Of a stretch of DNA of 64,000 nt, positions 15,870 to 36,483 are shown piece after piece. The notes below the pieces were generated by a model. It did not search any database, was not told where the DNA came from, and saw nothing but the letters and a program-made list of their open reading frames with translations. Origin of the DNA: Klebsormidium nitens (Eukaryota > Plantae > Klebsormidiophyceae); assembly GCA_000708835.1 (NCBI GenBank), contig DF237062.1, forward strand, positions 62,001 through 126,000, in the 5' to 3' direction. The position numbers and the translations under genes are program-made. The stretch's first letter is position 1. Each line of letters starts with the position of its first letter.

Positions 15870-17043
15870 AGAGGACGAGAATTGCTGTAAATGTTATCGG
15901 GTAGCGAAGCGAGTCCAAATGTGATGCAGTTTGCAGGTCCCCCTGTCTTTAAACGGTGTTCTGACCAAGTGTACTTATCATGCTGGACATATTGCTTCTT
16001 GAGAGATGGGGTGTTTCTCCGGCGTATTGGGGATCGGAGCTTTGAAGTATGAGAGATGTATGAAAGAATCTTAATAGCTCTTCTTGTGATAGTATAGTTG
16101 GTCTCTAATGGACCACAGAAAAGCACGAGACAGATCCTAGCGGACGGAAGCGGGATAAGGTCAGCTATACCGTGTGTGAGGTTGACTGAACGTGAGTCAA
16201 TCGGCGGCAGCTTTTGAACTTTAGTTGACGAGTCTTTAATACTTATGATATCATTTTGCCTATGGATCTTCTCAGTAACGTGGTGTCATGAGATCTTGAT
16301 GTTCAAGGGAATTTAAGTTGCATTCAACGTGCTCTTGGCAGCGATGAGTCCCTCAATTAGTCGCTGCTTGCCCTTAATAGACGTGCATAGCCGCACATGA
16401 CCATGCATCATGCACAATGAGATTTGCGGGTACGGACAACTCTTTGCCACCAATATTATCTTTCGATATAGCGGGGCAGCGTCTCAAATACAGCCTAGCA
16501 GTCTTTCCTAATTGTTCAAGTCCTTGGAGTCAAACCAACAATCTAAGCAGTCCCAGCTTGAGTCCCAGGCATTGATCTCGGGCGAATAGTGCATAATTGA
16601 GTATGCGTCGCCTCTTCTTTAAGTTTCCTAAATCTGCCCACCCAACCTTATGTTCCGCCCGTCCTACCTGTAATAGCTCAACCATACTAGTAAACTTACA
16701 GCAGCCATCGATCCCCATTAGCTCCACCCAGCGCCCATGATCAATCGGGGCACAAGTCTCGGTTTGCGTTCGAAGGGGCGAACCAAATCAAATCCTACAA
16801 ACACGTCTACATCTCATTCTCTCTCAAACCGGAGGGCTTCCTCAAGCAAGCTCGCACCCGATGCTGGCGTCCTTATAACTCAGAAGCTGCGCGTTAATAT
16901 AGATAAGAGCGCCGGCACAGCCGCGTAGCCATCATTGCGAGCCAAACTTGGAGGGTATCATTGCCGCGGCGTCCGTGGTTCCCGAGGGCTCATTCTCGAC
17001 CTCCTGCGCTCCCACGTACACCACCACTCGTGCGTTGCTGCTT

Positions 17044-20000
17044 CTAGAACAAACCCACAACGGCGCCAACGAGCGCGATCGCAACAGCAGCGCTAGCGAC
17101 GCTGGCCACGTCGACGCGGAGGCCGGCCGCGGCGCTCTTCTTGTCGGTCGTGGTGGGCGCGGGTGCGGGCGCGAGCGCGGGCGCAGGGACCGGGGCCGGA
17201 CCAGGAGCGGTAGTGATGTTAGAGCCCGTTCCGGGGGTCAGGCTCAGAATGGAGAATTGCGCGTTGGTGCCGATGGTGCCGCTGAGCCCCAGTGTCTGCA
17301 ACAGGTTGGAAACGTTCAATCAGCATCTGTTCGGAATTCAGTCCGTCCCTAGTTCTTTCCGCATCGTGTGACGCGCGCAGAGCCCGCCTGACTGCGACGG
17401 CCTCATGAAGAATCTGCGGAATTTTCAAGTGCTACTTCGGAAGTCTAAAGTTGATGGGGCATTGCCGAATGGGCTTTGTTGCTGTAGCCACTGGCCACAA
17501 CAGAGTTACTGGCCGCCATTGCTACCAGAGTCAACTTGCCCCGCGAAGATGCAACTCGAATGAAGGGGCGCGCGCGCGCCCCAACCGACATAATATATTG
17601 CCCAGCAAATCTGCCCGATGTAAGGTCCTTAGCGTCAAGCAAGAGACTGCCACTACCAGCATGAGACTTCAGCAGAAAGGGCCTGTTAACTCACCTTTAG
17701 CTCACTGTCCAAGGCTCCAGAGGCGGCCAGCTGCGTGAGGGTGGCCACCAGAGCTTTGGCTTCGTCGGTGCTCTTGACGGGAAGGGTCACAGTCGCCATG
17801 ACGTTGGCTGCACAGCGGGAGCGCATTGTGTATCAGAAACATGTGTTTTGAGTAACGCGTATTACAACTTAAGAGGACCGCGTTGAATCCTGAAGAGACC
17901 TGTCAGGGTCACCACAAGTTTCTCGCGAATCAAAGCACTTTTGTTAGAACGCATGATCCAAGAGCGATTGAATCTAGCTGAACGTGCTTTCCCTTCAAAG
18001 CCTGCTTGTAGAACCCAATTACGAGCGTACTGCAATCAACTGAGATGAGTGTCGAGGAGCCGGGCTCTTTCCGTAAAATGTCGCTCTTGTGTGAGCCCAG
18101 ACAGATCCCGAGTCGTCAGATGAGGATCACTTCAGCTCGCTTCTAAGCAAAGCTGACCGCGGCAAGCTCTAATCCCTTTGCTTTACGAAACATGCGGCCT
18201 GAGAAATTCAAATACTGGGGACTCGTTGTAAAGGGGTTTTCTCGCTTACCTCCGGTGACGTTGGGAGCCACGGTTACGTTCGTGATGCTGATGCCGCCGG
18301 CGGCCAGTGCGTTGACGAAGACACCGCCGGGCGACAGGGCGCCCTGGAGTTGCATGGCCAGGGGCCCGGCCTGCGAGCATGACGTCACCGTCAGTTTCAT
18401 GTTTTCGACTAACGGCATGAGGTCGATCAATCTCTGGTCTGAGAATCAGAGAATCTTGAGGCCCATCAACCGCTGTTATTTCTTACCAAGAGCCTTCGCT
18501 TGTCGAAGCTCGGATCAGTTGTGCTGATTGCAAGGCCACGCAGAAAGCCCGGTCGAATCACAAGCTCATAAGCTTGAACGGTCAAGCAGGCAGGCGTTGG
18601 TCCAAGCGAGTTCAAGACTTTACATCTTCAAAGGTTGAAAGCTTGAAAACTAAGGACGCAGATTCCAACAAATTCACCTCCGTCTGGCTGCTGCTCCAGA
18701 TGCTGAACTGGATGCTCAGGCTTCGTTTTAGGAGGAAAGATTTCAAATGGCAGGGCCGTAATAGTACAATGTTAAGAGTGTAACGCTCACTGCAAACCCA
18801 AAATCTTGATAGAAAGGATTCCTGAGAGCCTCACCTCCGTCTGGTTGCTGCTCTGGATGCTGAACTGGATGGTCAGGCTGGACCCGGTGCTATTGGTCAC
18901 GGCCTGGAGGAGCGCGCGGCGGCGGGCCGGGGAACCGGCCGGCGCGAGCGCGGCGAGACCGATCGGGTCGATGCTGAAGTCCGCCCCGACGCTGTCCGCG
19001 ATTGCCTTGAGTTCCGCCCGCAGGAGCGCCAGGCAGCGGTCCTCCCAGACGGACAGCGGAACGCCCACCTTGGCGATGTCCATGGTGCCGCCGATCTCGA
19101 GCGTCAGGAGCGCGACGGAGACCGCGGTCTTGTCGCCCGCGCCCGCATGGTTGGAGAGCGCGGTCACGATGGCCTGCGGGAAAGAATTCCGAAATTCTGT
19201 TTAGGGCTGGCCGAATTTGATCATCTTGTGACGTTCTTTTACCTTTTTATCTTCTTTGCTTTGAATGTGGATGAGTTCCTCAAATTCGGAGGACCGGAGC
19301 GTCGGATCTCAATCGATCTTCAGCTACTTGGAATGTTATCTGCGGCTCTTACGTGAACTGATACCTAGACTTGCATGGATTAGAATCTGACCAAGGCGTT
19401 GATATTCTTTGCCGCGCGGTCTCCTCGACCGCTTTTCAGGGGCCACAACTCCTCAAAGTTGCACGCTCTTACCTGGTGGTCTGCAGCCGAGAAGGAGTCT
19501 CCGCCTTGCTTCCTGATTGTGATCTTCAGCTGGGTGGTCGCAGAAAGGCACGGCACCACTTCGGTTCCGTCGCTGGTTGTGTCGCCCATGCCGGAAAGTA
19601 CGCCTGAGCAGAGGATGGAGTTTTACCGCCTGAGCCTGATATTTTCTTATTCCGTCTTCATTTTGACAGAAAGTCGGGTCGAGAGTCGTCGGATGGAAGG
19701 AAGCAATAAACACTCGCTTTCTCAGCGTCTTCCCCGTGTATATATGGAGTTGAGTATGCAGGAATCGAACTAAGCAACAAGAAAAACTCTAGGAATAAGC
19801 CTGGTCCCATCTATCACGAAAGCCCTTCTCATTTTCCATACAAGTCTCAACATGGTTTGGAAGAGGGCGACGCTTTGAGCACCCTTCAAAGCAACGCTCC
19901 TTCCCGGGCGCATGCAGCCGGATCTGAATTTAGAGCCCAGGAGTCATGGATTTAGAGGCGAACAGTGCAATCTCTACTATCCGCACCCAGAATCCTTGAC

Positions 20001-23000
20001 AAGATGGACGGGGATGAATGTTAAATGAAAGCAGATCCTCACCCTTCTTGCAGCCATACTTGGTAGGGTCGTAGCAGGAAGTTCCGCAAAGGTAGAGACC
20101 ACGGGGGCAGATCTGGAAAGAAAGGACAAGAATACATTATGTCGCAGATCCTGAAAGCTGAAAGATGGAGTCGACGTGCCTTCTTTGCGCGGAATGTACA
20201 CTAACAGTAGACTGATCAAGGAATCCTTGATGGAGCTTCATCATTCCTTTGTTCCATCCACGAATCCTTAAATAGCGAAGATATTATACCATTAATGGCA
20301 AGCCATCTGAATGTGAGTCTGCTTCCAACAAACCAAACAGCCTACGTACTTGACACATCAAGCTCACTTCAGAAATGCATGCTTCTGCGCCCTTCCAGAT
20401 CAGGCCAACCATATTGAAGTCGAAGGCATCATTGATTCCAGGCACCAAGCGAGGTTTCGAGCTAGCAGCTCCCAGTAGCAAACTGGCAACTTTGACGAAG
20501 AGCCGTTCTTCCGGATGTTTGAGGTCAGAAAGCTAACCTGGCCGTTGAGGCACCAATAGGTCTTCGCATCGTACTGCTGCACGCAGTTGGTCCAAAGGGT
20601 ATCCGTGCACGTTACGTCCACGGACGGAGGCTTCTCCAGGAGCTTCAGCAGCAAAATCTCCTTCTGATCTCCGCACGGGATGGTCTGGGAGCCGTCCGAA
20701 ACGATGCTGCCGAACTCGTCCGGCTGTACCAGCTCTCCGTTCTGGCAGCCGTACGCGTTGGGGTCGTAGCAGGCCGTGCCGCACCGGTTGAAACCGGCCA
20801 GGCAGTTCTGCAAGGGGTTTTCAGCTGTTAGCGGAAGGGCGGCTGACAGGGTCTTGACCCTTCACCTGCCACAGATGTATTGGAGCTGGGTAATGTCAAG
20901 GTACATGAGTATCAATTGTGGTCGTCTCAATGGTGTAACTTGACCAAACAATTCTGCTTGGGGAGTCCTAGACCGACATTTGCAGTCTTTTCAGGCGGAT
21001 CAACTTCGTGCGTTGAAGGTGTCAAGGACGTGAATTCAGCGGCTTGAATTAGAAGCTAAGATAAGGTATTCGACTGTTCAATTACGGAGGCCCTTTTGGC
21101 TATTGCACCAGTCTCCCGGTGCGTTGTACCGCGCCTCGATAAGCAAATCGCAAACTGTCGGCATCTATCACATCCTCTACGGTGTGAATGCGCACTAGAT
21201 TACGAGTCGCGGTCATCCGTTCGCACACGCCAGCAACGCAAGCGGGTAGGAAAGCAAAACAATGAACATCGCGCCCTCACCTGTCCGTTGATACACCAGT
21301 AATTCCCGCTCGCAGGCGCGCAGTTGGTCCACGGCGTCGTTCCTGGCGCGCAGACCGGCGATGTTGGGGCTTGCACGATGATCTGTCCCCTCTGGCAGGG
21401 CCCGACGCTGCTGAGCGGGTTGTTCTTGCTGAGGTCAGGAGTGAGGCCCGTCGGCGAGCAACCGAACTGAGTCGGGCTGGGAAGAAGCAAATTTTAGCGT
21501 CAGTAAGCACGAATGTCCGCTGGAGAAAATCAGAGACGTCTGCTCGGCGGTAAGGGAAAAAGCTTGCCGACAAAGCGCTTTCTCAGCAAAGTCCGCGAAA
21601 TAAGTCGTCCAACAAGTAGTTGTAAAGGTGAAAGTCCCCTTCGTTGACTGGACGTGCGGCCAAATGCGCAGAATGCTCTGATTAAAGCGACACCAGGCAA
21701 CTCCAGGCCTCCAACGAGTACACTAGCAAGCTGGTGGACTCTGAAAGCCTAGCCCGCAAACTGAGGCTCAAAGCTCTCAAATGGCACGCGTTCTCCCTGC
21801 GTGCAAACGAAAGTAGGTGCTTCTGTCTGGTGTTTCTATGCGACCAAGACTTGTTTGAGCCACTCACTTGTAGCAGTCCTTCTGGCATTTGAGCTGTCCG
21901 ATCTGGCAGGCGAGCCCGTCCATGCAAGCGTACGCCTTTGCGTCGAAAGGCTCGCAGTTGGTCCACGGAACGCACTGCTGGCTTGCCTCTGCAGTGGGTC
22001 GGGAGAAGGCACCGGTCAGCGTTTTCCAGATTCGAGAACTGGCGAAGACCGGAACATTTTGCGATGCTTGATCAACAACGGCCATCCTATGGCCTCCATC
22101 CCATCCATGTTTGCAACTAAGTTTAATGACAAGAGAAAAAGCCTAGAGCAGGTTTGTCAGGGCATCCTTGAGACTTGCCTGGCCGCTTTGATCAAGACCC
22201 TGACGTTGATATTCGAAAAGGGACTTGTATGTAAAAAGAATTGCAAGAGCATTCTGCACGGGGCACCAGCGGTTGCGGTAGCTCCCGAAAGCAGGGATCC
22301 CCCAAACTCTGACATGCGACAACGAAGAAGTCGTATGGACTTAGCGACGGAGCCTTACGCGATCTGCAGAAGTCGACGGGCGTGGCGTCGCTGCTGGCGA
22401 CAGCCGTCATCATCAGCGTGTTCTGCCTGCAGGAGAAGGCCTTGACCGCGCCTCCGCTCATGCTGAAGGAGCTGGGCAAAAAGCAGTGGTAGCTGTTGGA
22501 ACCGAAGCTGGCCCCGCCGCACTTCTCGTAGCCTGCTGGGCACATCTGTAGGAGAAAGGAGAAAGGACCGTTAACCAAGCCTGACTAGGCTGCGGTTAGA
22601 CATCTCTTCACCTGATTAACCTACCTAAGTTTTTTGGAGGAGAATGTTCAATCGCAGGATGACAACGAACTCTTACCCTCGAAGGTCAAAGAACCTGCGA
22701 TGCTCCAAGGTTAAGCATATTGATCTCGAAAGCGTACTTCAAACAACGCTATTGCGTTTCTATTATGCTTATAACCTTCTGACAAAATGTCCTGATTTTA
22801 CAAACGCCTCACCTGACCGTCCAAGCACGCGGCGGACGCTGGGAACATCTCAGACGGGCAGTTGGTCCAGGGAGTGCACCTCTGAGCTACGGGCAGGTTG
22901 GCGATGTTGGCGGGCGGCACGACCGCGCCTGTAAACATCTCATGCCTTGTAAGAACGCCACGTGGCATTTCATCCGTACTTCGAGGGAAGTAACGGCGCT

Positions 23001-26000
23001 GAAATACTCTCAGGATTGAGGTCGAGCTTTATGAAAAGCAAAGATTTTGCAAGGAATGTAAAAAGTTGCTCCTCTCCTGATGTTTCAAGATTTTCCGCCC
23101 CGTTAGTTAAAAGCCAGATTTTCATTATGCTTGCGGAATTCCTGCGTGCATTGCTGACTTTCGTCCTCGCAGCCGTAGCCAAAGTGCATCCTACTGGGGA
23201 TGGAGACATCAATGTATGCCTGACGTTTCACGCACCTCTGAACAGCCTGTAGAAGTCCACGTCGTTATTTGTAGCTGCCTCTCCCGTTGCGGCGCTCTTC
23301 AGCCAGCAGCAACCGGCGCGGACGCCGTTGTTGCCGAAAGAGAAGCCGACGCAGCTCTTGGTCGCGAGGCAGGCCTCCTCGCATTGAAGCTTGTTGGTGA
23401 GAACCTTCCCGGCCGAGAAGCACGTCGCTTCGTTGAAAGGCGCGGCGGTGATGTCGTTGAAGGCGAAGTCCTTCTTGAGATAGGCTGCGGGCAAAACACG
23501 CAGATTGGATTCAGAGCGATGCATCTTATGCCCGAGTCGGCATCGGGACAAGGAGACCGCTTCCAGAACACTAAGCGAAGGCTGCCGGTGGTAGATGAGT
23601 GCCCGGGTGTTCAAATTTGTGAAAGCTGCAAGCAGGCTTATGGGGACAGGGGGAAAACACAAGCAGGCTTATGGGGGCAGGGGGAAAACACATTTCGAAG
23701 CTGAGGAAACACGTCAACAGAGAAACAAAGACGAACCTGCCCTCTTACGCTTGAGCATATCCTTCACAATAAGCAACACTCAAGAATTCAATTCTCATCA
23801 TCTCCAAGTTTCTGAAACTTTTCACTAAACAGCCGTGGACTCACGTAAGACGGGCATGAAGTACGTGTCGACGCCGGCGGTGAAGCTGTATCCCGTCGCT
23901 GCCGACCTCAGATAGCAGCAGTCGTCAGAAGTTGCTGAAGTCGCCTGGCCGGTCAGCTGGAACATGATGCACCCAGTGGTGGAAGCGCAGAGCGCCGCGC
24001 ACTGGTCCGCCGTCCTCCCGGCCACGCCCTTGTTTCCGCACGTTTGTGAGGCGCCCGCGGCGGTGAGGGCTACGCTGTCGTAGTCGGCGTTCCGCTGGTA
24101 GGAGAAGCCGGCCGGAATGTCGGCTGCAAAATACGAGGGGGCGACGTTTCTAAGTGAAAGTGACGGCTGTATAAGCTCACAGATAGAAGATTCGTTTTTC
24201 TTTTCATGATAGGGTACTTGAAGAAGCAGATGGAACAGACAAACGCTCCAGGTAAAGCTGCGCGCAGCGAGCTGCAACTCAGCCATGCTAGGGGGCTTTT
24301 TCAAAGCCTTCTGTAAGATATCCTCCTGATAAGGTGGAGAAAATCAGCAAGTGATCGGTCCCAAAAGCTAGTTATTTGAAAAGCGGGAACCGAATCGTCT
24401 GTCGTTGTTGACCAACTCACGGATGTTCTGGCAGATGGTGATCTCAGACCCGTCGGAGATATCGTTCTGGAAAGGAATGAGGGATCCCTGGATGCAGACC
24501 AGCGCCGGCTTAGCGTTCGGGTCGTAGCAAGCAAACTCGTAGCCACTGCCGCACGCGATCTGGCCCGCCGGGCACAGCCTGCAGGGTTTGAGGGGTTTTA
24601 AAGTGATTGCATCAGCATTGTGCAAGTTTCGCTTGCAAGAATTCGAGCTTTTGACTGGTAGTTCTTGATGGATGGGGAGAAGCAGTATTCTATCCGATAT
24701 TGTCCGAAAGTGTCTCCAAGGGCTTCTAAAGTCATCCAAAGTCTCTTATTTTATGGCTGAAAGGATCTAGCATCTAAGAAGGGAGCGAACGACAGGCAAC
24801 AATTCTGGCTTCTTTTGGCCTCACCTTCCATTCAAGCAGACGTAGGCCTTGGTGTCGTAGTCGACGTCAGGAAGCCCGCAGTTGGACCACGGAACGCAGG
24901 GGGTAGCTGCACCAAAAACATGTCAGGAATGGCAAAACGGACAGGAATGTCAGACCGGATTACAGTAATTTCGATACTTGACCAGCTCTGATGTCAAAAG
25001 CATTCTGGCCGGATGAAAAGCTTTTCTATGAGCGTCAGCCAACAGCTTGGACTTGCGAGCAAGAAGAATAAGGAAGTCACGAAGAGCATCGAAGTTGCCG
25101 GTCGTTCCTCCGAATCGACTAGACCGTTTTTGTAGGTTAGATGATGATGCTTCTTCGATCATTCCACACAGGGGCTTCTTTTCTCCTGACTCACCTGGCG
25201 CGCAGTAACCAACGGCAGTCTGGTCGTCGAAGCCTGGCGTGTTGACAAGAACGTTGGCAGCACATGACTGCGTTTTAGGGTTGTAGCACGAGTACGAGCC
25301 CAAGAGGCCGCACGAATGCATGCCAGCGGGGCACAAGTTTCCGTTGAGGCACCTGCACAAAGGTGGTTCAAGTTCCTATGCTTATTCCGCATACCGACAA
25401 GATTGTTGCTGGCCGTTTCTGCTCTGCCGTTCAGGAGATTTTGACTTGGAAGCGACAAGGTTGTGCACCAAACCCAAAGTGCTTTAGAGGGCTCACAACG
25501 TGCTCAAGCTTCACTGACTATCTCGAATCTTGTTTACCCGTTGGCTTACAAAAAGGGGTGACAATTTAAGGCGTAATAATTGTTGAGAAAGGTAGATTGA
25601 AAGAAAGCAATCCAAGGACGAGCTTACCAGTAGGCGGTGGTGTCCCAGACACCGGGGCAGTTGTCCCACGCCAACTCATTGTTCGTGCAGGTCGGGGTGG
25701 TGACGGTTGGTCTCGCAGGGATGCCTTTGACTTTGCCTGCAAAAAAGCAGCACACTCATCAGCTTGATAACAAGGGGAGTCAGTGTCAGAAAACTACAAG
25801 CGAGGAGGTGAAGCGGACAGCACCTCGTCAGGAGCAACATACGGAAACCTTTCAAGACGCTAACTTAAGGAGACCTGGAGTTAGCGCACCTCATGGACTG
25901 GATCCAAAGCCATCTGAATCTGCAATACTGTCAAGACACTGTGTTCTCAGCGGCACTTCCTGGTGAATCAGCCGTCTCCAGAAACATTCCTCAAAACACC

Positions 26001-29000
26001 CTCAATATTGGCTCACTCTGGTCGCTGACCACCACTGAAACAAGGTCCAGTGCGCAGCCCGTGAACCCGCCATCGTTGGCGTCCTGCTCTGAGAAAGTGA
26101 GCGTCGACTGCTCAGCGGTTGCCAGGAACGTAACGGTCTGCTTCTCGAAAAGCATGTTGTCCTTTGTGCGGGTGATGCCATCCTTGGTCTTCAGCGTGCA
26201 TGTGAACGGGACGTCCTTGCCGGGCGCCAGGACGTGGATAAATTTGTCCTCGGGGCCCAGATCTGGGTTCTTGGCGAGGTAGAAGGTGACGTCATAGTAC
26301 GCGCCGGGGGTTGTGGCGAAAGTCTGCGGCACGGCGGGCCCAGTTAAAACGGATCACGGAGAGAGGAGTCAGCTCGAAAGGAGGAACGAGGAAACCAGCG
26401 AAATAGGAATATAACAGGACTAGAAGCACTACCAAAAATGAAACATTAAGCAGTTGCACCAAAGTACAGAAAAGTACCCCAGAAACCTTTTCTCGCCATC
26501 GACGATCCAGTAGATTTGGTTGTAACAAATGTCTCATTGAGGACATCCTTCTGGCGAGATTGACACCGACGTTTGTTGTGCAGAGCAGTCTGCTTAAGAA
26601 GCGTAAATCGCTGAGCTGGACGGATTAATCTATACCTTCACTCAAAACAGATGGTTTTTAAGTCTCCCAGGGGCCGTGTGACGAAGCTCTTCTTTGGACT
26701 CTGAAGGACTCATATCTTCAAGTAGCAAACAGTGCTGTTGTGATGCTTAGAAATTTGTGAGCACAGCCCTACCTGTTTGATCTCGCCGTTCGAATTACCC
26801 GCCATGTCCAAGGACCGAGTGCCAGAGTGGGAAACTGCACAGTTGAACGCACATCCAAATTAAGAAGGAAGCGGCGATGGTCTAGGCCGTAGTATTTCCA
26901 CGCCTGTCTTCAGATGCGGAAACAGTATAATTCTTGATTCAATCTCATCACGATGCTTGTAGCAGGGTCCTCAACACTCGAAAAGCAACATCTTCCAGGT
27001 CCTTCTCGTGTAGCTCCTTTTTTAGCTCGCATGTGGGCGAGACTCACCCCAGTACCCGTTGATAAGGTCGACTGAACCGGGGTTCGTGCTGACACCGTTG
27101 GGTGTTACCACCCAGCCTGCAAACAGATTGATGGAGTGCGCATTAGAAAGCATAGGGACCACGTGATAATGTCAACTTTTTGGCTGAGCAAAACAAGACC
27201 CCCGCCGGCTTGCTCAAATTTCCCCTCTGCACTATGTAAAAGTCTTTGAAATTGGACAAGCTGCAAGAACGCTTGTCCAAATCAGGAAGGACGAGTGGCC
27301 CGCATAGTCGTCTCCGGTGCGACCTACCTTCAGAGAAGCATCTGATTATGAACGAACAATGGCCGGATTGAAAATCAGGGTCTTTGGGTAAGGTGTTCAC
27401 GCTTACATGGGAGTGTTGTGGAGTCAGTGGCAAATATGGTGCTGAACGCCGAGCCCACGATGTTCCTTTGGACCGTTTCGAAGTCTCCGTTGCACAGCAA
27501 GTTTTCGGCCATCGTGTCTTGCGCTGCACCGAGGACCATGCTTACGTTAGCAACCGAAAGAACAAGGTCATTGAGTTGCAAGGGCAGGTTCGACCGAGGC
27601 ATGGAAGCCTTATCTGCTGGTCTAAAAGGGTCTCGACCTAGTACAGAACGTCACAGAACCGAACTTTTGCTGCTATGCAATGTACTGGAGGTTGAAGGGC
27701 CAAGACAAGCTCTCGGCCTAACGCTCGTCGAGACATTGGAAAGGAGCATTGGCGAGCAAGGAAGACGAGCAGCGACAGCCGCCATCTCTTCAAGAACGAT
27801 GAGACCATTGTTGACTTTGACTGGTAGCTGCTTCTCAGGGTGAGGAACAAAACAGAATCCATCTCTTTGCCCCCAGCAACAGAAAAGGGCGGGAGCAGGG
27901 GGAAGTTCCTCACCATTGGAGCATGCGGTGATGGGGGGACCATAGGCGCACGAGAAGTCGGCAGTGGGGTTGTAACAAACATAGCCTTCGTCGAAGTTGG
28001 TTGGGCACCTGCAAGAGTCGCAAGACACGAGCTTTTTCGCAATGAACACAGCGGGCTCGAGTCCGATCTCATTTTAACCAACTTGATTCAGCAACGTTTA
28101 AGAGTATAGAGCTTATTCAACATTGCAAAACAATACAAATGTCTTCAAAAACGGAAGACGCACAAACTCTCTTCGAATCTCGTCGTTTCTTGACGTCAAA
28201 AGGACAAAATTCAGATGTTCAAAGGGCGTTCTTTGCGCCCTGCTTCAATCTTGTCGGTTTTGTGCTTAGCGATCTGACGAGAGCTTCTTGACCAGGTCTT
28301 ACCTTGAATCGCCAATTGGGCAAAGCTTCCCATCGAGGCACGTGAATTGGGTGTTGTCATAATCGCCGCAGTTCGTCCAAGGGGCACAATACTCGATGGC
28401 GGCTGCGGAAAGAAGCAGAAAGACATGCGTCAGCGGCGTTAGAAGCATCATTAGCGGGTGTTGAAGAAGTTACTGAAGGAAGGCTCCTTCTTCTTGCTAA
28501 AGAAGATCTGCTAAACGCGAACTCCATACGGGGGCCGGAATATGAAGGTCGATCTTCCGGTTTTCCAGCTTGGAGATGATTACCGCCCTGCAAGTATAGG
28601 AAGTCCGACTAATGAAGGCGTCTTAAATATCGATTCTTCAGGGTCTTTTGCCACGAATCCGCCGTGGCGCCATCCTTCAGCCGTTTAATAGAATCCCTTA
28701 TGCAGTAACATCAAAACTAATGTATCTGAGGCTTTTTCGGCTTTGGGCTCCGTAGCCTGTTCTGCCTGTTGTGCCCTGGTAACCACCAAACATCAAAGAG
28801 CCGCACAGACTTTCGTACTCCCTACGCCCCTTGTCGCGCACCTGTCTGGCACGGCCCGACTGCGGTCGCGTCGTCGTGGTTGGGGCCGAGCTGCAGCGCG
28901 TTGTTGACGCAGGAGTACGTGGTCCCGGGCACGTAGCAGCTGAAGGAGCTCGGGGGGCCGCACCGCCAGGCTCCCGCCGGACACAGCTGCCAGATCAGGG

Positions 29001-32000
29001 CAAGGTCTCCATCAGTAAATGCTTTCAGGCATTTCGGGTTCGGTCTTTCTTGCAGACACAATGTAAATCAGCCACATTCAATCAGGTGGTGCAGCTCCAG
29101 AGATAATGCCCTGTGAAACTGAGACGTTCCGCCCACCCCATATAGATTCAGGTCAACTCAACTGTGCTCAGCCACACTGAATAGAAACGAAAGGGAACTT
29201 AGCGATCTTACCTGGCCGTTGAGGCACCAGTAATCATCGGTGCTGTACTCTCCGGCGCAGTTGGTCCAGGGCTCAGCGTTGCCGCAGAACGAGGAGGTTA
29301 TCTTGAAGATGATATCCTCCCGAATTATCAGCTTGAGGAGCTCTGCATGAGAGATTGAAGAAGACGGAACGTTATATTGGGAGTTGTGCTCATTCCACAT
29401 ACTTCATCTAGGGTCTGTACGGAGGCAATTTCTGCTTTTCATGACGGCTTTATTATCGAGAATCATGCAGAAGCAGAAGCTGCGGGACGTGAGCATCACA
29501 GCTGATTGTTGCATGTAAGCGAGAGCTTTTACGCTTTCCTTCAATCATCTTTCGCGGTCGACTTGCTCGTACACTGGGAATGCACCACGTTTCAGTAGGT
29601 CGATTTTCCAAAACACCTGACCGACAATCAGAGGAAGGCCCGGAGGCTTACGCAGCTCGTTGTTGGCGCAATACTTGATCTCGGTGGAGTCAGACTGCTG
29701 TTCGTCCTTCAGCTGCACCACGTTTCCGTTCTTGCAGCCATAGGCGGGGTCGGCGTTAGGGTCGAAGCAGGCGTACACTCCGTTGTCGGGGTTGGTGCAC
29801 CGGGAGAAGCCGTGCGGGCAAAGGACTCCGTCCAGGCAGCTGTGCACGTCGGGGTCGAAGTCACTGGCGCAATTGGTCCAGGGGTGGCATAGGTCGTTCT
29901 CTGGGGCTGTAGGGGCCAGGTGGAACTAGGTTCAGCTAATGACTCTTTCTAAAGCATAATGAGCTTCGGTTCAGCCGTCCCGACATCCAATTATTAGGTG
30001 TTCTCTGCGTCTTGAGAATTGGTTCGGTTAACGACTATTCATAAAGCATGATTAGCTTCAGTTCAGCGTTCTGTAGAACCATTTGTTTAATGGCCAAGTG
30101 CAGTCAAACGTGGTTGCTGAATAACGGGTTTCGTTGAACTCATTGCTTCGACCTCGACGCTTTCGGTCTCTTAGCGTGCACTAGAATGCCCAGTACGTAC
30201 CTAGTGAGTTCTGGCTCACTAGGTACGTACTGGGCATCACCAATTGTACTTTTACGATATGTGGTTTGCAGTTTTCATTATGGTCAGTCTAACGGCGGGG
30301 AGACATTGCCCGTGGGGTTCGGCTTCTGAGATTCGACGATGCATGACCTCACGACTGAAACACGAAGACCGGGAAAAGCGGCGGAGGGGCTCACGCTCGC
30401 ACGCGGTGACCTGGGTCCCGTCGTCCTTGTTTGCGCCCGACTTCAGCTTGTGGTTCTTGCAGCTGTGCGTGCCTCCGACGGTGTAGCAAGCGTAGTTGGT
30501 GTGGCTGTTGCCGCAGCGCGCCATGCCGATGGGGCACGCGAAGCCGTCCAGGCAGCTGTGAGTGGAGAGGTCGATGGTCCCGTCTTCGCAATTGGTGTAC
30601 AGAACGGACCCCGGGCACGAGGGCTGGCTTTTTGTAACGGCGGGCTGGATGGTGGTGCCTGCACGCGTCGGATGTTCATTTCAAACAGTTGCTTTTGGGC
30701 GATCGTCCATTTTGCTTGCGTTTCTCATGTCCCCCTGTCTTAATGTTCATAATAGCTTGCTCGCTATTGTCTGTTCCAGGAGGGCTTGAAGACAGAGGAC
30801 CTTGGCTGCTTTTCTCTGAAGCACTTGAGGTGCTCGAAGTTGCACGAGCATAACAAACGCCGAGCCTGGTAGAACAACAACCATATTGCGGTAAAGATCG
30901 AAGATACACTGCAGCGCTCGTCTATCTATTTCGAAAGCCAAAACGCTTCAGTTTGAACGTCTCAGTTCAAGAAAATCGTAGGAGGCCTTTGCATCAGAGA
31001 AGACCCAAGAAGCGGCAGACTGAATGACTTCGCGCCTCACAAATGAATCGCACTGAACCCGACAGCAAGACGCAGGAGCCAGGCGAATCGAAGCTCTGCG
31101 CTTACCTGAAGGCGCGCACTTTTTAATCACAGTTTCGTCCGATTGACCTGCGAACATTGACGGTGGAAGAGAAGTCAGCCGCCGGCCTTTTACTTCAGGG
31201 CCCTAAGAAAGACCTTTCCAACCCCTGAATTTCGCCTATCCCAAACTTGTCTCTCCAATGTCTTCACCGGTCAAGGGAATACCTTAGAAATGACATAGTC
31301 TTATTACGCAGTCATAAGATCTTTCCACGTGATAGCCTACGCTAATCGGGCAATCACTCTTGAATGCCTTTGATTGGATTGGAAATCCCCGGACTTGCAC
31401 TCTTTCTTGAGTGCTAAGATCTCAAAGGCGAGCTTTAAATCCTGACGGGCTCTCCTTACTTCCGTGATCGTTCTTCGCCACAGGATGTAAGTGCTTCTTG
31501 ATCCGCTTAACCACGGATCCGCGCTTGCCTTGCTAGAAATGGTAGATGCAGCTACTAATTACGTTTCCACAGGACCACGATTGTCGTGTCTAAGCTTGAA
31601 TAGACCTACAGTAACCTCTTTTCAGTAGAATTCGAGACGCACCTGACCTTACCAAGCCAGACCCGGCAAAAACCACACTTTGAAGAAGTAAGGCCGTGTT
31701 ACAAGCACTTGCTGGAGAATCAGGCAGTTGGCATCTGGAGAAGCAGGCTGGTATAAGGACGACTCACCCCTGCAACCGGAGGTTTCCAGCTTGCCGTCGA
31801 TGCACGAGGCGGGCGACTTGCCGCCCGGGTTGAAGCATACGTAAGCTTTGTCGTCGCCGCACTTCTGCCAGCCGCTGGGGCAAAGCGCGCCGTTGAGGCA
31901 TTCATACGCGTCCCTATCCCAGGAGCTTCCGCAGTTGTCCCATGGGGTTTTGCCATTGTTGCAGGTAGGGCCTGGAAGAAGGAGCGAGAATTTTTCCAGA

Positions 32001-35000
32001 GAAGCAATGGAGAGAGGATCAAAGGGGCTGCGAAACAATCAAACCGCCAAAAGCGCAGTCGACTCGGAAGCCTTTCTGGTCAAGTTCTGGAGAGAGGCAG
32101 CTTTGCCAGATACTGATGACTTGTATCTGGTTGACAGGCCCTTTTCAACAAGGGCTGTCAAGGGCATAGCTTTCTGCGTTTACTACTTGATGTTTCGACG
32201 AGCAGACTCTTCCAGTTGCTCGTCGGAATCCAACGGGATTGGTTTGCGAATTAAGCCGTGCTTCACTCACGAATAGCGCAGAACGATTGTGCCAATTGCT
32301 GAGCAGCAACCTACAAGCGAGATTGAAGAAGGCATAGCTCACGCACCGACGTAGCAGCGATCAATCTGGCTGTCGTCATCGTCATTGGCGGGTGTCACCA
32401 GCTTCCCTGCATGGCAAGAGTAAACCCCGCCCTTTTCGTAGCAGGAGGTGCCGCAGAGGGAGAAACCAGTCGGGCATATCTGCACGAAGCCAAAATCAGA
32501 GGGTTAAGGAGCAGAAATTAGATAATAAGAGAATTCAAGGAAGGGGGTTTGCTCAGAAGGTTACTTAAAGATGTTTTGGAGCTCGAAACACAGTCCCAAC
32601 ACGGGATTCGAATTCAAAGTGCTTCAATAAGGTAGATCTTTCATCCGAAGGGACTCGGAATCAACATGTGGAACTTAGAGCTGAACTAGCTTTAAACTAG
32701 CTCTAAATTTGGAAGGCGTGAAGTATCTTTTGGTTCGAAGGCCAAAATCGTAGCTGAATTGGATACCTGGCCATTCAGGCAGTCGTACGAATCCCGATCC
32801 CAGAGCCCGGGGCAGTTGGTCCAGAGCGGACATTTCTTGTCCACAGTGATCTTCTTTGCGAATTCGAGGTCGGTGCCTGCAGGGACGAGTGAGACAGGCT
32901 TCACTTTCGGTTTCGAGGGCATGCTGCATATCCCTTGCTGTGGAGATTCACCGAATCTTCCTTACTGAAAAGAGATGTACTAGGCTTTGGTGCGTGCTGA
33001 AATCGAATCGGAGTCTCTGCATTTAAGAGAAACAAGAGGAGACCCCAAGCAGGCTAGCTCTACTGGAACTCAAAGCGAGAGCAGTGCCGCAGCACTCACT
33101 CTTCTTGCAGAAGCAGACTTCTGAGCCGTCGTTCTCGGGGTTGGCCTGCGACACCGGCTGGACCATGCCCTGGATGCACACGTTGGTCTTCTGGACACCC
33201 CTTGGTTTCACATAGGACATGCCAACAGCGTCTTGTCCGCAGCGGCAGAAGCCCTTCATGCCAAGGACGTCGGCGTAGCACGAGAACTGGGACTCGTCAT
33301 GGTCGCCGCAGGTGTCGAACGGGTCGCAAGGAACGTAATCTGCAAAGATTTCAAACTATGATGACATCTCTGCAGGACAACCATTGTTTGGAATGGAAAG
33401 ATACCGGCCCAGGCAGCGCCTGCACTTGAGAGTCCAGCCGCACACTCTTCGTAATACTCAGGCTCCGCTTTTTTGGAACTTCAATCTCGTTCAAGCAGTA
33501 GGTGGACAGAGTTATTTGCACTGCCTCCAAAAGAGGGGTTTGGTTTTGAGCTTCTGTTCCTACGAGCAGCAAGGGAGGCTTAAAATTGGCAGTGGGGAAG
33601 CTTCGACGTGTTACAAAGTCTGGTCAATTCAATATATAGCCGCACAGCTGGCTTCTAAAGTAAAGGTACAGAGGATAAGCAAGAACAGGAGCCGCTTGTG
33701 CAGCAACACAGATATTTGAGCTACTCGAACCACAGATTTGTTGCTAGGAGAGAGCGCAAAGTTTGTGACATTCAGTTCGTGCGCAGCTTCCACAGACTTC
33801 AGTCCAGCTTGGCGATGCTAGGCTGTTTGAGGGCATCACTGACCTTCCTCGCACCGTGTGTAGGCAGTATCGTCGTCGATTCCGGGAACAGGAACAAGCT
33901 CGTTCTGGACGCAGCTTTGGGTGGCCTTGTTGGTGTTGCCTTCGTCCGCCTGCATCTGGAAGCACTTGAATGTCTTCGGGGAGACGCCGCACCTGCAGCC
34001 ATCGGCGTGTTGGTCAATCCCTTGGCTGATGCGTTCTTTACAGCTTGAAAACGCAGGCGATTGACTGTTGTCAGCCCCCTATGCTCTCGCGAATTGCTGT
34101 GAGGCCGTGCTGAACGACGGTCCGGTGACAAACTCCAAGCAATGACGGGTTTTGTTTCCCAGCTGTTGAGGACAAACTCTCAGAAGAGCAGGCCCAATCA
34201 AAGATCTTCAATACAGCTGTCTCAGCAATTGAAAACGGATGAGTGCACTGCCAGAAATTACTTGGGGACACAGCTCAGATTGATGGTTTAGCATCTTACC
34301 TGGAGTATGACTTGGGGCAGAGGACGCCGTTCAAGCTGCATCAAGAGACCGCAAAGGCACTTTTCTCAGAGAACGAGCAACGTGAACAGCCAGATCAGGA
34401 TGGTAAACCAAGCCAATAGTGCGTAATCAGCATTCCACTTTTTCGCAATGAGACGAGAGGCCACTGATGTTTCCACCATGAGGCTCCGCAGCGGACTCAC
34501 GAGTCTCTGCAAGTTACAACTCATGAAGCAAGCAAATAGATGGACAAGGGCCTAGCTCCAGTGGCACGTAAGGAACCACTATAAGATTAAAAGCTGATTC
34601 ACTCCGCAATTTCTACTCAACCAGATAATGTCAGTCGCCTCAAGAATTTGTGCTGACAGCAAGAAGAGACTCCTGCAAGAAACACTGACGTACTTTTCGA
34701 TTGATCTTTCTCCTCGCGACTTCGATTCAAAATAGGTACTCACCAGTCATAGGCTTCAGTGTCGTAGGCAAGTTTGGATCCACAGTTGGACCACGGTGTG
34801 CAATTTTTTGTTCTTAACGCCCTTACAATCTGCTTCAGCCGATCCTTGTCCCACTTGCCCGCATCCAGAACCGCCTTGCTGTAATCTGTAGCAAATCAGC
34901 GCCAAGTTATGTTCTGGCAAGTAGAGAAAGTTCACAAGGTTGACGGCTGATTCATGCCTATTCCGGGTTTGAGGACATTCAGGCCGAAAACAATAGAGCA

Positions 35001-36483
35001 AATCCGTTTCTTAGGCTCACGTTTGCCTTCGAGAGCACTACAATGCTGAAGGGTGCGTTTGCATTCCAGGCAAACTGATGACAGTTGCGGCAAGCAATCG
35101 GCACAAAAGCAGCGGCCTTCGCTTACCAACGCAGTTCGTTACTTGGGAGCCATCAGAGGGTCCTGGAAAGAGAGAATAGGAGATGAGACAGCCCCGAGTG
35201 TATATAAAAGTTTCAAGAAAGGAATAAGGGAAACCCCAACAGGTCTATTGCACCAGCCAGAATTGCAGGGATAAGCAGCCAGATGCATCCTTGATAATCG
35301 GATCTGAAGAATGATTGATCTCCTACCCCTTTATCTGACCAGAATTCTCTTTGAATTATCTCTTGATCAACTCCATAGGGAATGCTAACTGATCAAATTT
35401 ATGTCCATCAGCAAAGCTCCAGGGCTGAGTTGGATCCAGTACAACAGAGGGTGCCTACACCAAGGTTCCCTGGAAGATAGGATAAGTGTCTCACCATCGA
35501 ACAGCGTTTGCACAATTTCGTTATTGTGGCAACTGTATGCTGGGGTGACCCCAGGCGCATCTGCAGCGTCCAAGTAGCACGCGTAGTCGTCCCCACTCCC
35601 GCAGCGGCTATAGCCCAAGGGGCAGAGCCTGAACATGAGAAAGCGTATGCTTAGCACATTCGCTCACATCCAGCCCTTCCTTTGCTGGCCAGTTTGGGAG
35701 GGCAAGGGAGCAAAGGACGCTGAGATTGTAGGGGTGGGACTCGATCTGTAACTAAGAAATGCTGTACCGAGAACTCTATGAGCAAAACCAATTTGAGATG
35801 GTATTGTACATACTCAGTAATGAGCTTTGCTTTTTAGTGACTTCTGTTCTGCTTTGGCTCCCTGACTCCAAGCGTTGAGCGATCAGCCATCAATCTTCAT
35901 AGCAATCACCCTCTCACCTGCCTGTCAGAGATATCTGTGAAGGGATGTGTGGAGAAGGAGTGAAAATGCATGCTCAGATCATAGAGTTTAACCATAGGCG
36001 CGGATATGCATCAGCCTTTGAAGGTTTGCAAATCACAAGGATTTTCACCCGAGTATCTTATGAAAGAGCCTTAGGGTTTTTTGGAGTACCTGTTGATTCT
36101 CAAGAAACCAAGCACAGCGCTTTGAAGGGTCTGCCCTCACCACATCACAAGTAAGGACGTTTAGATCCTACGAAATACATTCACAACCCCAGATTGTGTC
36201 TCAAGGCCGCCACTCAGAAAGGAGAAGACAGAAGGTAAGGCTCTGGATTTGGACAAACTTACACCCCATCCAAGCAGGTGTACTGGTTGCTGTCGTACAC
36301 TCCACAGTTGGCCCATGGTGAACAGTATTTTTTGTCAATTGGAAGGAAATTGAAGCCTGTCATGTCGAAGGTAGCCATGGCCTCAGAAACTGGCACCGCA
36401 GCCAGAACCATCAAGGCCAGCAGTATAGTTGCGGGCGGCACAAGCACCAGCGAGCCATGCCCTGGGTTCCTGGCGTGCTTCAT
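17044..36483 (-). CDS. Giant modular secreted, putatively GPI-anchored surface protein (~2,011 aa, 36 exons): 15 Cys-rich CBM52-like repeats, a DUF642-like galactose-binding-fold domain, 2 PAN/Apple modules and a Pro/Ala-rich stalk
   Basis: Exons: 36483-36263, 35628-35495, 34885-34744, 34335-34300, 34043-33844, 33339-33100, 32933-32767, 32479-32347, 31971-31768, 30658-30395, 29906-29652, 29342-29212, 28986-28842, 28402-28303, 28008-27914, 27523-27407, 27116-27048, 26834-26773, 26323-26017, 25736-25628, 25352-25195, 24906-24825, 24578-24421, 24123-23845, 23484-23236, 22928-22813, 22545-22359, 21988-21868, 21476-21281, 20807-20538, 20112-20043, 19603-19473, 19173-18835, 18433-18250, 17807-17695, 17295-17044. 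They total 6036 nt with compatible phases; the acceptors at 32933 and 18433 are the weakest. The N-terminus has a hydrophobic signal (ATILLALMVLAAVPVSEA) and the C-terminus is hydrophobic (VASAAVAIALVGAVVGLF*). Domain names come from remembered family consensus, not a search. Confidence 0.85.
18678..18722 (-). pseudogene. Near-intact in-frame copy of the 3' end of surface-protein exon 33, with GT donor
   Basis: Copy SLSIQFSIWSSSQTE|gtgaa versus the real SLTIQFSIQSSNQTE|gtgag; offset 157 bp. Confidence 0.85.
23236..24123 (-). other. Two tandem PAN/Apple-like modules, each a single phase 1-1 exon
   Basis: TADQCAALCASTTGCIMFQL..DDCCYLRS and NKLQCEEACLATKSCVGFSF..GCCWLKS match the C-x3-C-x5-C..C-x-LKS core. 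Confidence 0.8.
23629..23690. repeat. 31-bp intronic tandem duplication (1 mismatch)
   Basis: CAAGCAGGCTTATGGGG(A/G)CAGGGGGAAAACA x2. Confidence 0.95.
26017..27523 (-). other. DUF642-like (galactose-binding-like fold) domain, exons 16-19 of the surface protein
   Basis: NLLCNGDFE..LPCWVV..GSVDLI..SLDMAG..GEIKQTFATTPGAYYDVTFYLA..TLTFS..GCALDLVSV follows the NGxFE..W.V...VD...LDL..G.I.QT pattern of this fold. Confidence 0.7.
30186..30237. repeat. Perfect 23-bp inverted repeat with a 6-nt loop (intronic)
   Basis: ATGCCCAGTACGTACCTAGTGAG-ttctgg-CTCACTAGGTACGTACTGGGCAT. Confidence 0.95.

Follow-up and report, generated by a model that had tools for sequence, protein, structure and literature searches.

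A predicted cell-surface protein with fifteen CBM52-related cysteine repeats, DUF642 and PAN domains in the streptophyte alga Klebsormidium nitens

A 64,000-nucleotide stretch of Klebsormidium nitens DNA (NCBI GenBank assembly GCA_000708835.1, contig DF237062.1, positions 62,001 to 126,000 of the forward strand; hereafter the window, to which coordinates refer unless stated otherwise) contains a large minus-strand gene built around fifteen cysteine-rich repeats. It is a single, real and expressed gene of a Klebsormidium-type streptophyte alga, and it is under purifying selection. Its product is predicted to be a secreted, heavily disulfide-bonded modular protein with no enzymatic or signaling domain. 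On profile evidence, the core of the repeat is homologous to the CBM52 module (PF10645), and with moderate confidence we propose that the protein is a membrane-tethered multivalent binder (a tether, scaffold or sensor) of a wall glycan, probably beta-1,3-glucan.

A first-pass annotation of the same DNA, made from the letters alone, had described one gene of about 2,000 amino acids at 17,044 to 36,483, ordered as signal peptide, nine repeats, DUF642, two repeats, two PAN domains, four repeats, stalk and tail. Coordinates, strand, length and domain order all held in the analysis below, in which RNA joints link several parts of the gene at the transcript level. Its choice of land plants as the frame of comparison was misplaced, the host being a streptophyte alga and not a land plant.

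Gene model and transcription

The cysteine-rich pieces form a long series of minus-strand stop-free segments from 36.5 kb to 17.0 kb, with the motifs C-x-PWxNC...C-L-[ND]-G and L-C-P-x-G-x3-C-G...C-Y-x-P...C-x-N-G-x-L. Exon chaining by dynamic programming, which scored codon log-odds and splice-site position weight matrices and left RNA introns unforced, assembled them into a single open frame of 36 exons. A laxer run of the same procedure was rejected, as it produced several spurious micro-exons, one of them contradicted by RNA, and a stricter intron penalty was used instead. Two short exons carrying the repeat-tail motif were added to the 36-exon model, giving 38 exons with zero internal stops. 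The resulting coding region runs on the minus strand from an ATG at 36483 to a stop at 17044-17046 (~38 exons, 1,995 amino acids). The boundaries of some exons are approximate, among them those of the stalk exons and the acceptor sites of exons 14 and 32.

RNA evidence was gathered for positions 22800-28799 (6,000 letters of the 19.4-kb gene) from Logan contigs of four runs from one organism, which match this stretch at 99% or better. The label of these runs as RNA is a guess, and the contigs themselves are spliced. Many RNA studies filed under a single species name also match the window at 99% or better. They define nine GT..AG introns on the minus strand (CT..AC on the plus strand), with RNA introns at 24124-24420, 24907-25194, 25353-25627, 25737-26016, 26324-26772, 26835-27047, 27117-27406 and 27524-27913. 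The model recovers 8 of the 8 RNA-supported introns tested, none of them forced. Where a repeat is split by an intron, its first and second parts are referred to as the a- and b-halves. Contig joints connect repeat 9b with the four DUF642 exons, the last of these with repeats 10a, 10b and 11a, and repeat 11b with the first PAN domain (PAN1); each contig-covered change of domain type within the tested stretch is bridged by RNA. A loose contig end at 22813 continues directly into the exon beginning at 22545.

The pieces could instead be adjacent genes, a decaying pseudogene or an artifact of exon chaining, an explanation that we consider highly improbable. It draws on the extent of the RNA, which covers only 6 kb and shows no spliced contig for three junctions within this stretch or for any junction beyond it, and on the lack of a public full-length protein model. 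It is contradicted, however, by the one stop-free frame through 38 exons, by the intact open reading frames (ORFs) that the same finder recovers in two other genomes, by purifying selection, by RNA joints at every tested change of domain type, and by the placement of the sorting signals, with a signal peptide at the N-terminus only and a membrane signal at the C-terminus only.

Orthologs and conservation

Two further contigs carry the gene: one from the Logan assembly SRR23617307 (27.9 kb) and one from a Joint Genome Institute (JGI) metagenome, 3300060285 (51.4 kb; Ga0590115_0003049). On both, tblastn matches form a colinear chain from exon 1 to exon 38. The Logan chain covers 1,798 of the 1,995 amino acids with 80% identity; for the JGI chain the figures are 1,535 of 1,995 and 50%. 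With the gene finder unchanged, the Logan ortholog is an intact ORF of 1,963 amino acids (37 exons, 15 repeats, 2 PAN domains), and the more distant JGI ortholog an intact ORF of 1,915 amino acids (33 exons, 15 repeats, 1 PAN domain). Both have the 9+2+4 repeat layout, and the signal peptide and terminal tail are kept in both in the same arrangement.

The ratio of nonsynonymous to synonymous substitution rates (dN/dS) is 0.30 (dS 0.41) in one comparison and 0.31 (dS 1.4) in the other. A blastn comparison with the closer ortholog covers 100% of exonic and 21% of intronic bases. The surroundings are also shared: a Cpn60 exon lies downstream of the gene in the window (9580-10317, minus strand), and a Pfam match to Cpn60 lies downstream of the Logan ortholog (19866-20126 of that contig); synteny therefore holds.

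In the JGI ortholog, repeats 4, 8 and 12 each occupy a single exon with no a|b intron; intron gain or loss has therefore taken place where the two halves meet (oriented positions on the JGI contig for the unsplit repeats and the single PAN domain: 6070-6264, 9530-9736, 16782-17021 and 15980-16246). Orthologous repeats are closer to each other than adjacent repeats are. Repeat 7, for example, shares 57% identity with repeat 7 of the distant ortholog versus 36% with its own neighbor, repeat 6. It follows that the array is old and that homogenization is not under way. The strict retention of fifteen distinct modules suggests that the length of the array, or the position of individual modules, matters.

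Domain architecture

From N- to C-terminus, the protein consists of a signal peptide, repeats 1-9, a DUF642 domain, repeats 10-11, PAN1, PAN2, repeats 12-15, a region of ~270 amino acids and a hydrophobic tail (Table 1). Repeat counts, tblastn against the fetched loci and dN/dS used the joined translation locally; Pfam, database and fold searches were run exon by exon or on stop-free segments.

The repeat is a unit of ~72 amino acids with eight cysteines, and the protein has 138 cysteines in its ~2,000 residues. A hidden Markov model (HMM) of full repeats, built from 14 full single-exon repeats of the window, the orthologs and a paralog (alignment A3), finds exactly 15 copies, the number counted in the first-pass annotation. 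The 11 repeats outside the training set score 24.8-68.5 bits, whereas 200 shuffles of the protein never exceed 7.5 bits; 13 of the 15 have exactly eight cysteines.

Strand-like segments alternate with helix-like ones in the membrane-proximal region, where a PAPVPAPALAPAPAP linker and five of the six N-glycosylation sequons are also located; a PAPVPAP linker sits between this ~270-amino-acid region and K-K-S-A-A-A-G. Exon-wise scans of the region returned no Pfam match. The best look-alike of its stalk exon in the Atlas scores 0.86, with nothing at 0.9 or above, and a SEA cluster at 0.77 is a lead only.

Only two hydrophobic segments occur in the protein, at residues ~8-40 and ~1969-1995. Together with the N-terminal signal peptide, the tail has the layout of a glycosylphosphatidylinositol (GPI) anchor signal: no cytoplasmic residues follow it, and a putative omega site with small residues precedes it by 8-12 positions. 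A C-terminal GPI-type signal, conserved in the orthologs too, is thus inferred to keep the protein at the external surface of the plasma membrane. Both terminal signals had been called in the first-pass annotation, as had the lack of a catalytic domain; no catalytic or signaling family was found by Pfam in any exon scanned.

Table 1. Coordinates of the predicted features of the gene in the window
Feature	Position	Strand	Evidence and remarks
Signal peptide, ~aa 1-35	36379..36483	-	Basic n-region, hydrophobic core, VSEA|MA; kept in both orthologs
Repeat 1, 3 exons	35131..36333	-	A3-HMM 60.7 bits; 8 Cys
Repeat 2, 3 exons	33851..34811	-	A3-HMM 51.9 bits; 8 Cys
Repeat 3, single exon, degenerate (PFDTC replaces PWxNC)	33107..33334	-	In HMM training set; kept in both orthologs
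Repeat 4, 2 exons, unsplit in distant ortholog	32354..32841	-	64.7 bits
Repeat 5, 2 exons, tail in short exon 31147-31106	31116..31963	-	73.5 bits
Repeat 6, single exon	30399..30617	-	87.1 bits; member of A3
Repeat 7, single exon, copy chosen for folding	29668..29898	-	94.3 bits
Repeat 8, 2 exons	28849..29286	-	68.5 bits
Repeat 9, 2 exons, truncated tail	27914..28397	-	49.0 bits; RNA joint 27523/27914 to DUF642 exons
DUF642, exons 27523-27407, 27116-27048, 26834-26773, 26323-26017	26017..27523	-	Pfam PF04862; all introns RNA-confirmed
Repeat 10, 2 exons	25202..25689	-	62.2 bits; RNA joints 25735/26016 and 25350/25626
Repeat 11, 2 exons	24431..24906	-	61.9 bits; RNA joints 24906/25195 and 24123/24421
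PAN/Apple domain 1	23845..24123	-	Profile A5 and AlphaFold2 fold match
PAN/Apple domain 2, absent from distant ortholog	23236..23484	-	PAN_4 23.8 bits; aligns with PAN1 in A5
Repeat 12, 2 exons	22366..22890	-	57.9 bits; RNA end 22813, continuing to exon at 22545
Repeat 13, 2 exons, variant	21395..21983	-	31.7 bits
Repeat 14, 2 exons	20673..21352	-	A3-HMM 24.8 bits; second half is the window's best PF10645 match
Repeat 15, 3 exons	19548..20609	-	54.4 bits
Membrane-proximal region, ~270 aa, no known family	17143..19547	-	88-91% identical in closer ortholog
Putative C-terminal signal: KKSAAAG, short spacer, terminal 21-residue hydrophobic tail	17047..17142	-	GPI-anchor-like layout

Kinship of the repeat with CBM52

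Two further alignments were used for the repeat: A2, consisting of 14 b-halves with their tails, and A4, consisting of bona fide PF10645 segments. The consensus of A3 is C-x2-W-T-N-C-x4-D-x4-S-C-L-D-G-x-L-C-P-x-G-x2-R-C-G-x5-Y-x-C-Y-x-P-x-G-x3-S-C-x2-G-x-L-x6-D-D-G-T-x-V-x2-C, in agreement with the consensus given in the first-pass annotation, and that of A4 reads C-G-x2-C-Y-...-Y-x-C-x-D-G-x-L-C-P-x-G-x3-C-G-x2-C-Y-x-P-x2-Y-x-C-x2-G-x-L. The two profiles align by hhalign with a probability of 98.1% (E 6.8e-14, 38 columns; 97.8% in a local rerun). The match is not a composition effect, because 200 column-shuffled versions of A4 reach at most 7.9% and a PAN profile 0.1%. The likeness to CBM52, which the first-pass annotation had proposed, is thereby backed by controlled profile evidence.

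Scores against the Pfam model itself lie close to its gathering score of 25 bits. The best piece in the window is repeat 14b (24.2 bits, E 4e-5), and at E up to 1 the model finds 3 of the 14 b-halves and 6 of the 14 full repeats, all below 25 bits. An orthologous fragment (P0010) passes at 26.9 bits. A Pfam check for PF10645, which the first-pass annotation had named, thus gives a score above the threshold for the ortholog fragment and scores just short of it for the window's own repeats.

The repeat keeps six of the seven core cysteines of the ~49-amino-acid PF10645 framework, having lost the first C-Y cysteine, and gains two: one in an N-terminal C-x-PWxNC cap and one in a DDG(S/T)xVxxC tail. 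The PWxNC element had been recognized as an addition in the first-pass annotation, and it is indeed absent from the PF10645 core; the cysteine tail is a second addition. As judged from the alignments, cap and tail are lineage-specific additions to the repeat, and their two cysteines plausibly pair with each other. Conserved aromatic positions (W, Y/F and Y) are present in every repeat. An internal duplication of the a- and b-halves was also considered, and it is not claimed, as hhalign gave only 13% over 8 columns.

In fungi, the carbohydrate-binding module of Eng1 comprises three repeats of ~50 amino acids, and the enzyme needs it both to act on insoluble beta-1,3-glucan and to be targeted to the septum (PMC3627985). 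A Magnaporthe oryzae protein, GBP, consisting of a signal peptide and CBM52, has been described as a putative glucan-binding protein (10.1101/2025.07.03.663104). The fungal and algal modules share, over 36-38 aligned columns, the skeleton Y-x-C-x-[DN]-G-x-L-C-P-x-G-x3-C-G-...-C-Y-x-P-...-Y-x-C-x-x-G-x-L, and both occur in tandem within secreted proteins. They differ in that the algal protein has 15 copies, not one to four, and no GH81 catalytic domain, and in that the algal unit carries the cap and tail, lacks the first C-Y cysteine, and has a ligand binding that is predicted only.

Relatives in protein databases

The A2 profile was scored against 1.84 billion representative proteins (a library of 50%-identity representatives) and gave 18 matches at E ≤1e-3. 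Ten of these are short ORF fragments on the Logan and JGI contigs described above. Six others share only the tandem CPxGxxxCGxxCYxPxxYxCxxGxL unit and are bona fide PF10645 proteins (32-73 bits). One match, a kinase/WD40 protein, was discarded as a false positive.

The remaining match, and the only annotated relative, is the K. nitens hypothetical protein GAQ79556.1 (KFL_000330030; P0013 in the search), of 385 amino acids. Its signal peptide is followed by two full repeats and a Pro/Thr stalk, and then by a transmembrane helix with a cytoplasmic tail; a homology search with it returned no homolog of similar length, only the protein itself. The extended eight-cysteine repeat with its DDGTE..NC tail, the signal peptide and the Pro/Thr-rich stalk are common to both proteins. 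In contrast to the fifteen-repeat protein, GAQ79556.1 has only two repeats, with GWxNC in place of PWxNC, a true transmembrane helix followed by a cytoplasmic tail, and neither DUF642 nor PAN.

No long multi-repeat protein and no full-length model of the gene was found among the 1.84 billion representatives, K. nitens proteome included. The gene thus appears to be without a full-length public protein model, as fits the expectation in the first-pass annotation that automated annotation would fragment it. Two scans of metagenome contigs also gave no match, a result of little weight because the method depends on near-exact peptide words.

Tandem PF10645 units were also found in WP_299685284.1 (P0016), which is labelled 'uncultured Dokdonia sp.' and comes from a contig of 34 kb, and in a metagenomic protein (P0011) such units adjoin a CBM96 domain. 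The distribution of the PF10645 module may thus reach beyond fungi, or the Dokdonia and metagenomic bins may be contaminated. In the searchable literature, CBM52/PF10645 is mentioned for fungi only. All three domain families of the algal protein are already known; what is new is the eight-cysteine variant of the module, its occurrence in a streptophyte alga, its fifteen-fold array, and the combination of this array with DUF642, PAN and a GPI-type tail.

DUF642 and PAN/Apple domains

The domain called DUF642-like in the first-pass annotation scores above the Pfam cut-off. The last DUF642 exon matches PF04862 at 32.7 and 27.5 bits (gathering score 27 bits), and its counterparts in the orthologs score 41.5 and 43.6 bits. 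This one exon holds only profile positions ~68-157, and the N-terminal half lies in exons of 38, 22 and 20 amino acids, which are too short to score singly. DUF642 proteins have been described as spermatophyte-specific (PMC4264326). The predicted DUF642 domain, above the Pfam threshold in an alga, contradicts that claim. Land-plant DUF642 wall proteins such as Arabidopsis BIIDXI (At4g32460) share with the algal protein the domain and an extracellular location. The plant proteins, however, are small and made of DUF642 domains only, whereas the algal protein has a single DUF642 inside a giant mosaic.

The PAN assignment of the first-pass annotation stands by profile and fold but not by Pfam score, as PAN2 (23.8 bits) and PAN1 (15.1 bits) both fall under the PAN_4 cut-off of 27. 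A profile of five PAN sequences (A5) matched solved structures of the factor XI apple domain (E 1.1e-12) and of kallikrein (E 1e-7). An AlphaFold2 model of PAN1 (predicted local distance difference test, pLDDT, 76.6) has top Foldseek matches that are all PAN/Apple domains, including the factor XI apple domain (TM-score 0.66, root-mean-square deviation 2.3), kallikrein, the HGF N-domain, plasminogen, Sarcocystis SML-2 and Toxoplasma TgMIC4. The algal protein is therefore similar to the oomycete/apicomplexan PAN/Apple lectin-adhesins (Sarcocystis SML-2, Toxoplasma MIC4) in having this fold, by structural match, on a secreted protein of predicted adhesive type; identity with the algal PAN domains is only 15-20%, and the partner domains differ.

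Predicted fold of the repeat

Repeat 7 was modeled with AlphaFold2 from the A3 alignment (pLDDT 87.6; predicted TM-score, pTM, 0.72). The model consists of six short strands forming three beta-hairpins, each turning at C-x-[DN]-G. Foldseek against the PDB gave no match with E below 4, and an exhaustive VIA search of the PDB returned only zebrafish granulin (6cku; Z 2.2 over 45 residues). By shape, Atlas matches reach a TM-score of at most 0.50, with a granulin cluster at 0.46; by features, the Atlas gave no usable match for a repeat. The repeat profile, compared with PDB sequences, produced only chance matches to antibody knob peptides and no CBM52 structure. No solved structure thus resembles the predicted fold convincingly. 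The fold check proposed for single repeats in the first-pass annotation yielded a hairpin model but not the structural match.

Granulin, the sole PDB chain at Z of at least 2, is like the repeat model a stack of short beta-hairpins with disulfides. A Z of 2.2 is nevertheless too weak for a common fold, and the repeat has neither the 12-cysteine motif of granulin nor sequence similarity to it. This faint likeness (Z 2.2; TM-score 0.46) is the structural basis for an alternative that we regard as unlikely, in which the protein is a structural or adhesive matrix protein. Its cysteine modules would be rigid non-lectin spacers, as in granulin- or EGF-type repeats, and filament cells or the substrate would be held through protein-protein contacts, for example by PAN. 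The strictly conserved repeat number would suit a ruler or spacer, and the cap, the tail and the loss of one cysteine set the repeat apart from canonical PF10645. On the other hand, there is solid statistical support for homology to a family whose defining property is glucan binding, the aromatic positions are kept throughout the array, and the protein has two further domain types with carbohydrate- or wall-binding members.

Other features of the window

The window has ~52% GC and is eukaryotic, and Rfam and tRNA scans of its 64 kb gave zero matches. A run of 20 N at 44779-44798 marks an assembly gap. On the plus strand, an ORF at 42546-43277 has degenerate proline-rich tandem units (…GGNLSPRAL / LSPQAL…) in a stretch of 56-59% GC. 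A further plus-strand ORF segment at 1764-2288 resembles, by motif recognition (…IIDKRR…), what we take to be a ribose-phosphate pyrophosphokinase.

Proposed function

CBM52, DUF642 and PAN/Apple are all families with carbohydrate- or wall-binding members. The glycan binder proposed here would work by avidity: a rod strung with hairpin modules, each of which binds glycan only weakly, would hold on to a polymeric glucan of the wall. Contacts to proteins or to other polymers of the wall may be made by the DUF642 and PAN domains. The protein would thereby couple membrane and wall, or convey the condition of the wall to a partner with a signaling domain. The best candidate ligand would be callose, which is abundant and desiccation-induced in the cross walls of Klebsormidium: an increase in the undulating cross walls is seen in the first 30 min of desiccation, and terminal walls contain much of it (PMC4650865).

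Several points weigh against this proposal. Glycan binding by the algal modules is a prediction from family kinship, and single repeats of the window score under the PF10645 gathering threshold. The PF10645 proteins compared were retrieved with the profile of this very gene, and they are its closest members, not a random sample. With a core cysteine lost and cap and tail added, the specificity of the repeat may have changed, and the PDB yielded no CBM52 structure whose binding site could be compared. GPI anchoring is predicted from the sequence layout. Finally, RNA was tested over 6 kb of 19.4 kb, and no single molecule spans the whole gene.

The same domain evidence would also serve a pattern-recognition co-receptor, in which the array binds beta-glucan of fungal or oomycete walls and signals through a partner receptor kinase. 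In land plants, GPI-anchored LysM proteins present chitin in an analogous way, and a GPI-like tail without a signaling domain is the usual layout of a co-receptor. We nevertheless give this reading only a small chance. The 15 repeats are kept one-to-one, with dN/dS ~0.3 across a deep divergence, a pattern in which the diversifying selection usual for immune receptors is not apparent. Such a receptor would also face a problem of self-recognition, the alga's own wall being rich in the candidate ligand (PMC4650865).

The glycan binder can be framed more narrowly, as the first CBM52-type glucan-binding array outside fungi, acting as a membrane-anchored callose 'ruler' or tether between the plasma membrane and the cross walls during desiccation and rehydration. 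In this specific form it is speculative and rather improbable. If true, it would represent an early streptophyte wall-integrity device working without a kinase domain.

Implications

Klebsormidium is a model for the adaptation of green algae to land, and its tolerance of desiccation has been connected with walls that are flexible and rich in callose. To our knowledge, no callose-binding surface protein is known from this alga, and the gene provides a concrete, testable candidate for one. As a large, conserved and expressed gene that appears to be missing from public protein sets, it would be overlooked by proteomic and comparative studies of this model alga. Its repeat also adds the streptophyte lineage to the range of a module familiar from glucanases and glucan-binding proteins of fungi.

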